The notes beneath the pieces were generated by a model. It was not told the DNA's origin, searched no databases, and worked only from the letters and a program-made list of their open reading frames with translations. Both the position numbers and the translations under genes were made by a program. From the sequence record LC727699.1: 64,000 nt of DNA. One strand, 5' to 3'. Shown in pieces: positions 11,292 to 64,000 of this stretch (positions are counted from its first letter, which is position 1; every line of letters starts with the position of its first letter).

Positions 11292-11411
11292 ATGAGATTG
11301 GTGATACCAGACATTGAAGTCTTACAAAAGGCTATATCTAAAAACAGCGCAAATAAGAAATATAGTAGTACTGCATCTTGTCTAATTAATGGTGATAAAC
11401 AAAATGGCTGA
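11292..11411 (+). CDS. 39-aa leader ORF MRLVIPDIEVLQKAISKNSANKKYSSTASCLINGDKQNG
   Basis: Strong AGGAGG SD; TGA 11409-11411 overlaps ATG 11404 of the RNAP subunit; below the ORF-track cutoff. Confidence 0.55.
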   Translation: MRLVIPDIEVLQKAISKNSANKKYSSTASCLINGDKQNG

Positions 11412-12582: not shown

Positions 12583-12889
12583 AATTAATATCCATCCATC
12601 TCTCAGGAATGGATATTGTCAAATTGCCTGCTTGATCTCGAAAGAGTCAAGTAAATCCTCTCTAATTGCTGGGACATCTCAATGAGACAATCAGCAGCGA
12701 AGCTTTCCAGAAATGGATTGAACGTTCAACGACTATCCGGTTACGCGGAGTACACTCAAGCGAGTGGAAATGGGAGGGACCTGACCACCTAGGGTGAAGG
12801 TTAAGATATAGTCTGGTCTGCATGGTGACATGCAGCTGCCTGCAATACGAGAGGCGGGGTAAGCGTAGCGAACTTACCTGAACATAACG
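12583..12889 (+). mobile_element. Group I self-splicing intron, subclass IA2, 307 nt, no homing endonuclease ORF
   Basis: P AATTGCTGGGA 12664, Q AATCAGCAGC 12689, R GTTCAACGACTA 12724, S AAGATATAGTCT 12803; P7 GACTA/TAGTC; P3 CCTCTC/GGGAGG; P7.1 and P7.2 stems; exon ends in U, intron ends in G; splicing restores in-frame FHGG|KGVICKV. Confidence 0.93.
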
Positions 12890-27094: not shown

Positions 27095-27462
27095 TATATC
27101 AGTGGAAGCGCCGAGGAGGATATGAATGTTCATCTGTTGGTGACAAAAGATTCTCGGCTCTTTACGCAAGGCTTCCTGATGGCAGAACAATTGAGGAAGC
27201 TTGGCAGTTAGATTGTAAAGGATATCGCATATACTCCAACCATTGGAAAGCTGGTAAAGGAAAACCACCACTAGACGGGTATAATCCCAAATATGATGAT
27301 TATAAAAATCTGTGGAAAGTATGGGCGGTATCTAATAAACATCTAATGGATGAATTGCGTCAGAATGCAAAAGAACATGATAACTATCTTTCTGATGTTT
27401 TTGCTTCTACTGATATTTCACAGGCACGTGCTCTAGCAGAACTACTTAATGAAGGATATTAA
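27094..27462 (+). CDS. Unannotated 122-codon frame without ATG start, NADAR-like motif pattern
   Basis: IYQWKRRGGYECSSVGDKRFSALYARLPDGRTIEEAWQLDCKGY...KGKPP...STDISQARALAELLNEGY*; open from 27082; missed by the ORF track. Confidence 0.7.
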   Translation: MYQWKRRGGYECSSVGDKRFSALYARLPDGRTIEEAWQLDCKGYRIYSNHWKAGKGKPPLDGYNPKYDDYKNLWKVWAVSNKHLMDELRQNAKEHDNYLSDVFASTDISQARALAELLNEGY

Positions 27463-27530
27463 AAAATGGAAGGTATTCCTAATTAAATATTATCAATTGA
27501 TCATTACTGCTAACATAAACTTCGACACAT

Positions 27531-27560
27531 CATAAAACCCTCCCATTACGGGAGGGTTTA
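27531..27560. terminator. Bidirectional hairpin AACCCTCCC-ATTAC-GGGAGGGTT
   Basis: Between convergent genes; CATAA on the 5' side. Confidence 0.7.
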
Positions 27561-27565
27561 TTTCG

Positions 27566-55299: not shown

Positions 55300-55347
55300 T
55301 TACTGTAAACCATATCATACAACTTAATGTAAATAGGGGCTTTTATA

Positions 55348-60480: not shown

Positions 60481-60519
60481 CTAAACAATATTTACTATAG
60501 TAAATAAGGAGAAATACAA

Positions 60520-60663
60520 ATGACTAATGAAGAAATTATCGTAGATGAAAGTAAATGGGCCGATGACAGCGAGATGGTTGGCTGTAAACCAGTTGATCTG
60601 TTTATTGATTTTTACTGGGTAGAGCCCACTCATCATACTCAAGAAGGAAAAGAGGATAATTAA
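60520..60663 (+). CDS. 47-aa acidic protein MTNEEIIVDESKWADDSEMVGCKPVDLFIDFYWVEPTHHTQEGKEDN
   Basis: AAGGAG SD; below the ORF-track cutoff. Confidence 0.6.
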   Translation: MTNEEIIVDESKWADDSEMVGCKPVDLFIDFYWVEPTHHTQEGKEDN

Positions 60664-60664
60664 C

Positions 60665-60940
60665 ATGGGTGAATATACACAGAATGGTATTCGTCATTTT
60701 CGTCCGGATGATACCGAAGATACCTTTTATATCTTGGGTGATTGTTATGTAGCCAATACTATCGCCGATATTATCGAGATGGCAACTAAGAAATGGGGTG
60801 ATGGTATTACTCTTGATATGATTAATATCAGTACTGAATATATTCATACAAGTTGTCTAGGGTATGATGAGTACGACCCCAGCGATTACAGTAATTATTT
60901 ATGCATCTCTCGTGTTAGGGAAACATCGCTGGTTAAATAA
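60665..60940 (+). CDS. Hypothetical acidic protein (91 aa)
   Basis: GAGGA SD; followed by a hairpin. Confidence 0.7.
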   Translation: MGEYTQNGIRHFRPDDTEDTFYILGDCYVANTIADIIEMATKKWGDGITLDMINISTEYIHTSCLGYDEYDPSDYSNYLCISRVRETSLVK

Positions 60941-61105
60941 ATTAACGACATAATCCCTCTCCTTCGGGAGAGGGCATTTATTCAGTTAAACTTTTAAGAA
61001 TAAAAGAATTAGCCCTACTGTTACAGCAGTAGGGCTATATGCCGTTGAGTAAAAAATACTCAACATTTTCGCCCAAGTGGGCTTGGATTAACAAGAGGAA
61101 CAATC

Positions 61106-61411
61106 ATGTTAATTCCAGTTACCGCTAACAATGTTAGCCCTGACCTGCACAGAATGCAGGAAGTAGGTTTCTTTTTCAAGAGACCCGATGGATCAACCCA
61201 TAGCATGTCGGTTGCGAAAACGCAAGCCGATAATGTTATCCAATGTCGAGATCGTAGAGGTAACTTCATTGGTTATTGGGCTGGCCCTACAATAGGATAC
61301 GTCAACAACGCAGGTTTAGCCGTATCCATCAACCCCTTCGACAATTTCATAGTAACATACACTGACATGGATCAGAAGAAGTTCTATGTAACCGAAAGGA
61401 GAAGCCTATGA
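61106..61411 (+). CDS. Hypothetical protein (101 aa)
   Basis: GAGGA SD; upstream hairpin-TATG element at 61011-61040. Confidence 0.7.
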   Translation: MLIPVTANNVSPDLHRMQEVGFFFKRPDGSTHSMSVAKTQADNVIQCRDRRGNFIGYWAGPTIGYVNNAGLAVSINPFDNFIVTYTDMDQKKFYVTERRSL

Positions 61412-61419
61412 TAAACAAC

Positions 61420-61460
61420 CCCTCTCCTAAAGGAGAGGGACTTATCTGAATTCTTTTTTT
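61420..61460 (+). terminator. Terminator CCCTCTCC-TAAA-GGAGAGGG plus T tract
   Basis: 8-bp stem after stop 61411. Confidence 0.7.
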
Positions 61461-61915
61461 GTTTAAGTGAGAGCCGCCCGCTAAAGCGGCTCCCAAGTGG
61501 AGTTAAGTCTCCCGCTAAAGAGAAACTCCAGAATACATGGGGTAGCGACTCCTCATGTAGATATCCTAATTAATCTCTTTAGCTAGTAATCAATACCCGT
61601 TATCACTCGTTGATAATTGATTTGTTTATTAACTAATTTGACTTAATCAGAATGATCAATACATATTGTTAATAATCTAGTATATTATTACCAGTATCAT
61701 TGAGTAATACTGGTAATCAAATATTACTCATGAATCTTACCTAATGTGGAACTGAGGAATCGGATCGCCCCGTAGGGGCTTTTATTTCATAATAAACTAT
61801 ACCGAAGGTATATCCTTATTCTAATAATAAACAATATTAGCATTATTCTAATAGCGTTAGCTAATACATACTGTCTCCCTAAAAGGAGACACAGTATAGA
61901 TTATATTTTTTTTAA
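61461..61915. ncRNA. Candidate structured non-coding RNA or replication origin
   Basis: No ORF; at least nine inverted repeats, repeated CCGCTAAA loops, a complementary TAGCG loop and a pseudoknot-compatible pairing; strand undetermined. Confidence 0.45.
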
Positions 61916-62021
61916 TTAAAAATAATAAGTCTAGAGATAGACTTTCTTTATGCCTTTAATACCTTCTAATTTGCTCTATAATCGATTTTATTCGTTATTC
62001 ACTAGCATATTAGCCATACGA

Positions 62022-62051
62022 CATAAAAGCCCTCCTATGAGGGCTTAAATG
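62022..62051 (-). terminator. Hairpin AAGCCCTC-CTAT-GAGGGCTT ending the minus-strand operon
   Basis: Directly after the minus-strand stop at 62054; CATAA flank. Confidence 0.65.
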
Positions 62052-62053
62052 CT

Positions 62054-62290
62054 TTATTTTTCATTAGTCGGATATAGGAGTACAATAGACTCTGCGCATA
62101 CTTTAATAACTTGGATATTTTCACTGTCATTATTTTTTGATTGTTTATTTTTAACGCAGTATTCAAATTGTTGGGATTTGAGTTTATATACGTTATTGTT
62201 CTCTTCTCCCAGTATTCCTCCAAATACCAATCCTAGGATAAATATTAATAAACCACCAATAAAGATAATATAAATATTACCATAGTACAT
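62054..62290 (-). CDS. Small membrane-anchored protein (78 aa)
   Basis: N-terminal TM segment IYIIFIGGLLIFILGLVFGGILG; AGGAG SD. Confidence 0.65.
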   Translation of the reverse strand: MYYGNIYIIFIGGLLIFILGLVFGGILGEENNNVYKLKSQQFEYCVKNKQSKNNDSENIQVIKVCAESIVLLYPTNEK

Positions 62291-62291
62291 A

Positions 62292-62660
62292 TTACATTAA
62301 CTCCTTTACATCATCTGGAATAGATTCACACCGATCTAAATCCCAGTATATATGCGTGTAATGATCTTGATTTACAATACTGATGAAATCCCCATTAGGA
62401 TCAGGTAAAGGTTTACGGATCACATCGACATAGATAGTGTAGTACAGATATAGATCACTGATAAGTTCATCGATATTGAGGTTATTACCTTCTGCATATT
62501 TACCATATTTAAAATAATGGGCTTCTTCTGCCACAGCATAACGGATTTTATCGTAATTTTGTGATGCGGCATATACACGTGCAAATAGGGGTCGATTAAA
62601 CTTTCTACATTCACTAATATTCTTTCTTAAAGTATTTACTAAATTATCAATTGCACTCAT
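62292..62660 (-). CDS. Hypothetical protein (122 aa)
   Basis: AGGT SD; ORF track. Confidence 0.7.
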   Translation of the reverse strand: MSAIDNLVNTLRKNISECRKFNRPLFARVYAASQNYDKIRYAVAEEAHYFKYGKYAEGNNLNIDELISDLYLYYTIYVDVIRKPLPDPNGDFISIVNQDHYTHIYWDLDRCESIPDDVKELM

Positions 62661-62685
62661 TTAGATTACCTATTAAAATTATAGT

Positions 62686-62711
62686 GCTCTCCCCGAAGGG
62701 AGAGCTTTATG
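62686..62711 (-). terminator. Hairpin GCTCTCCC-CGAA-GGGAGAGC after the helicase stop
   Basis: On the minus strand it reads CATAA-hairpin with a UUCG loop. Confidence 0.7.
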
Positions 62712-62714
62712 TTG

Positions 62715-64000
62715 TTAATATCCCCAGTCATCTCCACCAGTTGCTTGCATATTACTAAGACTTGGTACGAAATCCATGTAATTGTTTTCTTCTTTATCGA
62801 TATCCCATCTAATGCCACCGATACGGTCTGGATCAAACGGCATAACAAAATAGTGATGCTTACTATCACTTACAACGTTACGGTGTTTACCACGTTGTAC
62901 AGTTAGATAATACTTACCACTTACTTTAACAATGTGGAAGAAGAATTCCAGATCAGGTTCTTGTCCAAGTCGACGACAACCATCATAGTAACCTTTGTTA
63001 GCAACTTGTTTAACAAAGTCTTCTGGTGGGATATTATCCCTGATTAGTTCTAATGCCTGAGAACTTAACTGATGCGGACTAAAGAATGTGATACCACGTG
63101 GTGCAGTATAGTTACGCATTCGCCTAAATAGGAGACGAACGTCATCACCTGCTACACTGGTCACTAATCCAGTTTTAGGCAACATGTTTAGATAATCTAC
63201 GCAGAGATATTGTAGTTCATAACCACGTGCTTGATATGTATCTAGGTAGTTAACTAAACCAGCAATCGTAAATTCAGTTGGGTCAAAACGATACATTACT
63301 GGTTCAAAACCATTTTCACGGAGACGAGCTGATACATATTCAGCTGCTTCAGCTTTACTAATAGAACTACGATCTACCTTGATACCTGTTTCATTTTCGT
63401 AAATATACTCATAAATGAAAATAAGGTTATCCGGAATCTCATTCTCAAGAGTAATAAACATTACTAATGGTTTCTTATTGATATCACGCATGTATGGTTT
63501 ATTAAATAGACACACATGGCAAAATAGACTCATAGAAACGCCAGATTTATATTGATGTTGTAGGCCACCACCGATAATAAATTCACCACGTTTTAATGCA
63601 CCCAGATCACCAAGCATCCTGTTAAAACCTTTCCATCCAGTTCGGAAAGCACCATTTGGTGAAAGAATGGTTTTAGCTTCTTCGAAGAAGCCTTCAATAG
63701 AGTCTAGATTACCAAAATCAAGTGCACCCATTTCAGCTGGGTGTTTCTCTTCAGCACGCGCGCGAATATATGGGTCAGCTCTGGTTGCCATTTCATTAAT
63801 GATTGCCGGAATATCAGCAGAGCCCCTATTGAAAAGAATTTTTGATGAACATTCTTTTACAATAGCTTTTACCTTCTCATCAGCTAAGTAGCTATTTAGA
63901 TCACGACGATATGAAGTTACACGCATGGCCAATGCCATGCCATTTGGAAATTCTTCTTCTACTGCATTTTTAACAGCATCGTATAGATAACTTTCTTCAC
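62715..64000 (-). CDS. dnaB: DnaB-like replicative helicase (phiKZ gp118 homolog), 5' end beyond the window
   Basis: TGWKGFNRMLG, Walker A variant GGGLQHQYKS, FITLEN, Walker B CVDYLNML, HQLS; frame open to the window edge. Confidence 0.82.
   Translation of the reverse strand, partial: EESYLYDAVKNAVEEEFPNGMALAMRVTSYRRDLNSYLADEKVKAIVKECSSKILFNRGSADIPAIINEMATRADPYIRARAEEKHPAEMGALDFGNLDSIEGFFEEAKTILSPNGAFRTGWKGFNRMLGDLGALKRGEFIIGGGLQHQYKSGVSMSLFCHVCLFNKPYMRDINKKPLVMFITLENEIPDNLIFIYEYIYENETGIKVDRSSISKAEAAEYVSARLRENGFEPVMYRFDPTEFTIAGLVNYLDTYQARGYELQYLCVDYLNMLPKTGLVTSVAGDDVRLLFRRMRNYTAPRGITFFSPHQLSSQALELIRDNIPPEDFVKQVANKGYYDGCRRLGQEPDLEFFFHIVKVSGKYYLTVQRGKHRNVVSDSKHHYFVMPFDPDRIGGIRWDIDKEENNYMDFVPSLSNMQATGGDDWGY

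Follow-up and report, generated by a model that had tools for sequence, protein, structure and literature searches.

The window, the whole stretch of 64,000 nt that we analysed, is DNA of a phiKZ-species phage, a giant phage of the phiKZ type. Positions 61300–62150 are 100% identical to positions 114560–115410 of the phiKZ reference (AF399011 / NC_004629), and the non-coding island located there is, together with its flanks, 96–100% identical to 47 phiKZ-species records. Over the whole 64 kb the identity to NC_004629 is about 99% with indels, e.g. around 11296–11403 and 55329–55337. Because of the indels in the rest of the window, published phiKZ coordinates can be converted by an offset of +53260 only inside the island.

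In the reference annotation the neighboring genes are all located on the minus strand: p39 and p40 left of the gap, p41 (117.3), 117.4 and the gene of a DnaB-like helicase right of it. The helicase gene ends at 62715, 800 nt from 61915, as the initial annotation had estimated (about 800 bp). In a six-frame scan, 61412–62034 (623 nt) contained no ORF of at least 60 aa and 61497–62034 (538 nt) none of at least 40 aa; by either cutoff, the window contains no longer one. The next-longest ORF-free stretches measure 322 nt (a group I intron) and 275 nt. The description of the island as a gap without ORFs between two terminators, the largest of the window, therefore holds, with 623 nt against 322 nt for the runner-up. 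The group I intron lies at 12607–12835 in the RNA-polymerase gene region (Rfam RF00028, 84 bits) and accounts for the second-longest ORF-free stretch, and 27272–27565 (294 nt) is the third-longest of the window. Gene 117.3 (62054–62290, minus strand, 78 aa) is absent or replaced in SL2, ANB1, OMKO1 and others, and the alignment is rich in indels precisely across this gene.

We identified the following features in and around the island, from left to right:

61417–61460, plus strand: terminator of a plus-strand ORF of 101 aa; 8-bp GC stem, loop TAAA, CTTAT and a run of seven T
61465–61662, minus strand: ncRNA TU089, also named 5'UTR_p40, about 197 nt; published TSS and 3' end, northern blot
61663–61686, minus strand: published middle promoter P060; TACT at 61682–61679, TSS at G 61662, TATG context
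61687–61717, no strand: perfect palindrome of 31 bp between the divergent promoters; 11-bp arms, 9-nt spacer
61715–61745, plus strand: predicted middle-type promoter; AT-rich stretch, TACT at 61725–61728, 17 nt, G 61746 (TAATG)
61746–61787, plus strand: predicted short RNA, about 42 nt; purine-rich 5' segment, hairpin 1 (61767–61779), TTTTATTT
61788–61913, plus strand: predicted read-through part, about 165 nt in total; AATAAAC, hairpins, direct repeats, T8
61798–61812, plus strand: hairpin 2, within the read-through part
61852–61863, plus strand: small hairpin TAGC-GTTA-GCTA, within the read-through part
61868–61897, plus strand: hairpin 4, followed by the T8 run at 61906–61913, end of the read-through part
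61914–62021, no strand: AT-rich spacer; one 7-bp hairpin with a GAGA loop at about 61929–61946
62022–62051, minus strand: terminator of canonical phiKZ type closing the operon of the DnaB-like helicase, 117.4 and 117.3

It is highly improbable that the gap hides small protein genes, e.g. the ORFs of 29–32 aa. Such ORFs of about 30 aa are annotated in ANB1, KEN19 and AttikonH10 at the equivalents of about 61499–61588 and 61950–62048, and a 32-aa ORF is present in the ORF list of the window. However, these ORFs are not preceded by a Shine-Dalgarno sequence, overlap with the published ncRNA or with a terminator and are omitted from most annotations, and the lengths of the indels among the relatives at the locus are not divisible by three (the relative L005, for one, has about 40 nt more). 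Known RNA classes were not detected either. ARAGORN found no tRNA or tmRNA in the window, and an Infernal search, proposed with the initial annotation as a check, matched the island to no Rfam family at gathering thresholds, the best permissive match reaching 22.5 bits against a threshold of 70. Sigma-70 promoters are not enriched (4 sites, 11 expected), as is usual when a phage relies on polymerases of its own.

The flanking terminators described by the initial annotation are both present, and their stem-loops are equally stable: 61420–61439 on the plus strand with −15.4 kcal/mol and a T run at 61454–60, and 62027–62046 on the minus strand with −15.4 kcal/mol and the tail TTTTATGTCGT. The published phiKZ intrinsic terminator motif consists of a GC-rich stem-loop and a YTTATKYYGT-like tail; it is found at 62022–62051(-) as well as at 61417–61450(+). 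The sequence 61417–61460 is terminator-like on the minus strand, too. The loop of its hairpin (61428–61431) reads TAAA in the window. Phage Wadjak 2 has exactly the reverse-complemented loop, TTTA, and three others have TTCA; such flips of the loop may be a general trait of these terminator hairpins. All ten stems listed before between the terminators do fold, three of them only weakly. The strong ones (61471–92, 61498–530, 61534–59, 61687–717, 61767–79 and 61868–97) range between −7.9 and −14.1 kcal/mol, the weak ones (61588–622, 61798–812 and 61835–66) between −3 and −5 kcal/mol, and five of the ten, among them 61627–74, are more stable on the minus strand. Compared to shuffled sequences, folding of 61465–61662 gave z-scores of −5.7 on the minus and −4.7 on the plus strand, and 61663–62021 gave −3.1 and −3.8 on the two strands. 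The spacer 61914–62021 and its GAGA-loop hairpin show no conservation outside the phiKZ species.

A published leftward RNA and the coding strand of its flank

The left part of the island has already been described. By ONT-cappable-seq Putzeys et al. 2024 (PMC10914365) mapped the middle promoter P060 with its TSS at 114922(-), which is window position 61662, and a 3' end, T053, at 114725(-), window position 61465. The two ends delimit TU089, a 197-nt unit without a gene, while TU088 is a read-through unit of 715 nt reaching from 114922 to 114207 on the minus strand (PMC10914365). The Grad-seq study of Gerovac et al. 2021 (PMC8545117) contains the first 180 nt of the p40 5' UTR, confirmed by northern blot as an RNA of about 180 nt, which the ONT-cappable-seq paper (PMC10914365) refers to as 5'UTR_gp40. 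The TU089 sequence of the window is 100% identical to the reference. The left half is hence published, and the finding in its first wording is largely known. Of the claim of a structured RNA, the left 200 nt stand as a northern-confirmed RNA on the minus strand, while evidence for one RNA of 450 nt was not found.

On the minus strand TU089 folds with an MFE of −65.1 kcal/mol (z −5.7); a long hairpin at the 5' end, two hairpins in the middle and one of 12 bp at the 3' end (61468–61495) make up the structure. Several of the stems noticed before are hairpins of this RNA, and they are stronger on the minus strand due to their G-U pairs. This agrees with the earlier view that a G-U pair favors RNA, as the stronger strand is the strand of the published RNA. 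Behind the 3' hairpin lies an A-rich run and no U tract; since the sequencing method adds poly(A), we infer that the exact 3' end within this run is uncertain. Among 12 phiKZ-type genomes TU089 shows seven variable sites, four of which are unpaired, one changes U-G to C-G and two break a pair. With relatives 96–100% identical these sites are too few to assess covariation. PA1C has no counterpart of TU089.

We also compared the two possible coding strands of the left flank. The reference annotates p39 (61060–61269) and p40 (61273–61368) on the minus strand, overlapping with a plus-strand ORF of 101 aa (61106–61411), which takes the place of p39/p40 in all ten other annotations that we fetched. 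The plus-strand ORF has a ribosome site, AGAGGA, 4 nt upstream of its ATG and the terminator 61417–61460 downstream, is open in 12 of 12 phiKZ-type genomes and has a PHROG family of its own, whereas p39 and p40 have none. By contrast, p39 is interrupted by a stop in two of the 12 genomes compared, ANB1 (codon 16) and KEN19 (codon 3); p40 differs by two synonymous and two non-synonymous changes only. The ONT-cappable-seq tables list no plus-strand transcript over the 101-aa ORF, and the middle-promoter-like site upstream of it scores poorly with 0.03 bits. Judged from these comparisons of sequences, the reference annotation of p39/p40 is probably on the wrong strand and the 101-aa ORF is probably real.

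This bears on the reading of the leftward transcripts. TU088 (minus strand) spans the plus-strand ORF 61106–61411, so the two overlap in cis-antisense orientation. As p39 is interrupted in relatives and the plus-strand ORF stays open, TU088 would be antisense to a real gene on the plus strand and not an mRNA. Likewise, since p39 and p40 look non-coding, the 197-nt RNA would not be a true 5' UTR, which suggests a stand-alone ncRNA or an attenuator. The probable strand error of p39/p40 also appears to be a new point. Correcting it would mean that a known ncRNA has to be re-read as antisense or stand-alone RNA, not as a leader.

A published and a predicted promoter around a palindrome

To the right of P060 follows the perfect 31-bp palindrome, which extends imperfectly across 61678–61726. 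Both sides of the palindrome show the same succession of ATACTGGTAAT, an A/T-rich stretch and TACT. Published phiKZ middle promoters, which are read by the non-virion RNA polymerase, consist of an A-rich stretch and TACT about 20–22 nt before the start. The plus-strand site at 61715–61745 has this composition, an A/T-rich stretch and TACT at the given spacing. We built a promoter matrix from 11 published middle promoters, holding out P060, and scanned 99.4 kb on both strands (198,754 positions). The plus-strand site scored 13.15 bits and ranked 12th of the 198,754 positions; outside the training set only one position scored higher. P060, which was held out and has been mapped experimentally, ranked below the plus-strand site (7.66 bits, rank 80 of 198,754). 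A stricter middle-promoter motif occurs six times in 128 kb, and two of these occurrences are the back-to-back pair described here. The plus-strand TACT is invariant in all seven aligned relatives, and the spacing is equal in 10 phages.

The spacer of the palindrome is found in two orientations. In 12 of 47 GenBank records, namely the PA7 group, SL2, Wadjak 2 and FBPa36, the 9 nt are exactly reverse-complemented, which appears as five linked substitutions; because of the inversion BLAST reports matches at two places per record. The flip transfers one TACT box to the opposite strand. Small inversions between hairpin arms, so-called flip-flop loops, are a common neutral mutation in non-coding chloroplast DNA. 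As in chloroplasts, the phiKZ loop is reverse-complemented between perfect arms and polymorphic among near-identical genomes; unlike the chloroplast loops, it is situated between two divergent promoters. Since a TACT box changes strand, this inversion may have an effect. Such a putative two-way middle promoter, palindromic and with a flipping spacer, appears to be new, and the spacer offers a natural handle on the promoter architecture of the non-virion polymerase.

The conserved rightward unit

Outside the phiKZ species a BLAST search recovered only 61775–61832, with about 90% identity, in eight PA1C-type genomes, where the matches are placed identically beyond the 3' end of the helicase operon. 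Between phiKZ and PA1C this block of 58 nt is 90% identical and the helicase gene 66% at the DNA level, and nothing else in the comparison of the two aligns with an identity comparable to that of the block. Using the helicase protein to locate the loci of more distant relatives, and reading the strand that corresponds to the plus strand of the window, we found a shared architecture in 11 phages: phiKZ, PA1C, phiPA3, 201phi2-1, Viktualia and six uncultivated metagenomic relatives. The unit starts with TACT, 17 nt and a purine, followed by a purine-rich segment ending in GGAYC. Hairpin 1 has the core CCC-GTA-GGG or CCTCC-GGA-GGAGG and is followed by TTTTATT. Then come AATAWAC, hairpin 2, a CCTTA block, a small AGC-GNNA-GCT hairpin and a strong terminator. 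In the 11 phages the unit is always located at the 3' end of the helicase operon. In the window it contains two direct repeats, D4 and D6, of 13–16 nt in two copies each.

A profile of the unit detected the left-out sequences L030, L005 and L050 with E-values of 5e-20, 9e-18 and 1e-33, respectively. The unit is present in one copy in about 100 kb of phiKZ scanned. Pattern scans of IMG/VR gave no members beyond six known contigs, and a metagenome scan added one, L050. In Psa21 and RVTF4 the unit is absent within 4.5 kb of the helicase gene.

The surroundings of the unit differ among the relatives. In six to seven of them (L004, L005, L007, L008, L029, L030 and L032) a CCTGATCAGG palindrome lies about 40 nt upstream of TACT, a leftward late-type promoter (…CGTATG) adjoins the unit in divergent orientation, and beside it begins a minus-strand gene; in Viktualia this is a virion protein gene. 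As the relatives carry a different left neighbor, the rightward unit is the constant and the left neighbor the variable part of the locus. This rightward unit, conserved across genera, appears to be new.

We assessed whether the hairpins are conserved as structures, a check already named in the initial annotation. It came out positive for right-unit hairpins 2 and 4; the left RNA, with its seven variable sites, offers too few. Hairpin 2 shows no mismatch in 11 sequences and two to three Watson-Crick pair types at four of six positions, and hairpin 4 covaries likewise (stems counted by hand). In a MAFFT alignment with fixed columns 90.8% of the cells pair, compared to 36–51% when the partners are slid, and the covariation score of 0.274 was reached by none of 500 shuffles (0.148 ± 0.022). 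The MAFFT alignment misplaces the triloops of phiKZ and PA1C, which works against this result. MAFFT combined with RNAalifold recovered hairpin 1 only in the right unit, because triloop and tetraloop versions are misaligned. Since the stems are at the same time perfect DNA palindromes, the covariation would equally fit a dimeric DNA-binding site. A helix pairing the purine-rich 5' segment over a long range with the CCUUA block was rejected; its duplex energies did not clearly surpass those of shuffled sequences (p between 0.02 and 0.42 per sequence) and the paired positions were not homologous.

The plus strand is favored by the promoter and by the T tract following hairpin 1, both on this strand, by the minus transcripts of the helicase operon, which reach strong terminators before the conserved blocks, and by two U-G pairs. 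These pairs, found in L005 (hairpin 4) and in PA1C and phiPA3 (stem of hairpin 1), are the only ones informative on strand, and the right unit folds about equally on the plus and minus strands (z −3.1 and −2.6). The signals on the plus strand predict the right part to be a short plus-strand transcription unit of about 42 nt, or about 165 nt on read-through. The ONT-cappable-seq tables contain no plus-strand TSS, 3' end or ncRNA at phiKZ 115,000–115,199. The method misses RNAs shorter than about 80 nt (PMC10914365). Given this limit, a common RNA of 165 nt should have been detected and only the form of about 42 nt could have escaped. A preprint on transposon mutagenesis of phiKZ is silent on intergenic regions.

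The same tables would also suit a cluster of terminators and promoters only, in which the stems insulate the helicase operon and an RNA from the right half has no function of its own. The locus would then be a stack of uni- and bidirectional terminators, and its conservation would reflect overlapping polymerase signals. Such a stack agrees with the roughly tenfold enrichment of terminator-like sites in 60500–63000 (10 sites, 1.1 ± 1.1 expected from shuffles), with the T tract after hairpin 1 on the plus strand and GTTTATTA after hairpin 2 on the minus strand. In the relatives, hairpin 4 matches the phiKZ terminator motif, with a terminator tail on both strands, and in Viktualia it lies directly against the stop codon of the minus-strand gene upstream; hairpin 1 corresponds to the motif in part only, since its stem of 4–5 bp is weak for a terminator. 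However, terminator stems normally drift, whereas here blocks outside the stems, such as AATAAAC and the run CCTTATTC...TAGCGTTAGCT, are about 90% identical where the helicase proteins are about 60% identical. Conserved, too, are the TACT box and the spacing of 17 nt, and the matrix rates the site as a strong promoter. We therefore regard an explanation by terminators and promoters only as unlikely.

Two probable transcription units and their relation to known systems

The observations are best explained if the locus is compact and non-coding and comprises two small units transcribed divergently, with their back-to-back promoters in a palindrome and terminators on the flanks; we consider this reading probable, with some reservation. 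Both units would be read by the non-virion RNA polymerase of the phage from middle-type promoters, and the terminators of the neighboring operons would fence the locus. To the left, according to the literature, P060 fires at G 61662; most transcripts end after the hairpin 61468–61495 as a stable RNA with four hairpins and about 197 nt, and the remaining ones continue to 715 nt, the read-through RNA being putatively antisense to the plus-strand gene. To the right, a mirror-image promoter with TACT at 61725 would start transcription near G 61746. The RNA would end at hairpin 1 and its U tract after about 42 nt, or, on read-through, at hairpin 4 and T8 after about 165 nt. Strong selection acts on its sequence as well as on its hairpins in several genera, so that the rightward unit probably functions as a small regulatory RNA.

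It seems distinctly unlikely that the conserved block serves nucleus-forming giant phages as their origin of replication or as some other essential DNA site acting in cis. In that case the block would comprise the middle promoter, the purine-rich start, the palindromic hairpins and AT-rich repeats, kept in at least four lineages (phiKZ, PA1C, phiPA3 and 201phi2-1). Known transcription-dependent origins provide the model. The primary origin of T7 combines the promoters 1.1A/1.1B with an AT-rich stretch, and oriF and oriG of T4 a middle promoter with an unwinding element. As in these origins, promoters of a phage polymerase adjoin AT-rich DNA near replication genes in the island, a likeness of anatomy only; unlike there, the island promoters precede hairpin terminators, a feature that speaks against a lasting RNA-DNA hybrid.

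For a transcription-activated origin in particular, middle-promoter transcripts would open or prime the AT-rich DNA and the palindrome would be extruded as a cruciform; its probability we likewise put at the low end. The promoters adjoin a stretch of 27.7–28.7% GC, the place at the end of the helicase operon is kept in 11 phages, and the block is more conserved at the DNA level than the helicase gene. In addition, the stems form perfect palindromes, the palindrome spacer flips and short direct repeats occur as two pairs. Neither 'origin of replication' nor 'replication origin' occurs as a term in a 2026 review of jumbo phages. However, the right half with its 27.7% GC is matched or undercut by four other windows of 300 nt, the repeats are two-copy repeats only where iterons comprise at least three spaced direct repeats, no recognizable initiator gene is located beside the locus, and inversions between hairpin arms are commonly neutral, as known from chloroplast DNA. 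The AT-rich spacer 61914–62021 is not conserved, and Psa21 and RVTF4 lack the unit at the helicase site. GC skew changes sign only where gene orientation changes; as it follows the gene strand, it is uninformative on an origin.

In the reading that we prefer, with two divergent transcription units, the rightward one is far better conserved across giant-phage genera than the adjacent essential gene. It is for this reason a good candidate for a regulatory RNA or cis-element belonging to the core of nucleus-forming phages; how these use RNA and where they start replication is poorly understood.

Both units can be compared with described phage RNAs. TU089 / 5'UTR_p40 (PMC8545117, PMC10914365) has the same sequence, promoter P060 and 3' end as 61465–61662; it spans only the left 200 nt of the island, on the strand opposite to that of the flanking plus-strand terminator. 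The right unit resembles the sRNAs of giant phages (PMC11512511) in having a phage promoter and a nearby terminator, with position and sequence conserved across genera. One of these, an sRNA generated by promoter-proximal termination, is located upstream of phiKZ gp182 and 201phi2-1 gp277 and is conserved in EL and phiPA3 (PMC11512511). The sRNAs of the gp182/gp277 type were observed as transcripts and belong to the 5' UTR of the gene that follows them, whereas the right unit has no downstream gene on its own strand and is predicted from sequence. Its homologue in 201phi2-1 may be among the three intergenic sRNAs of that phage.
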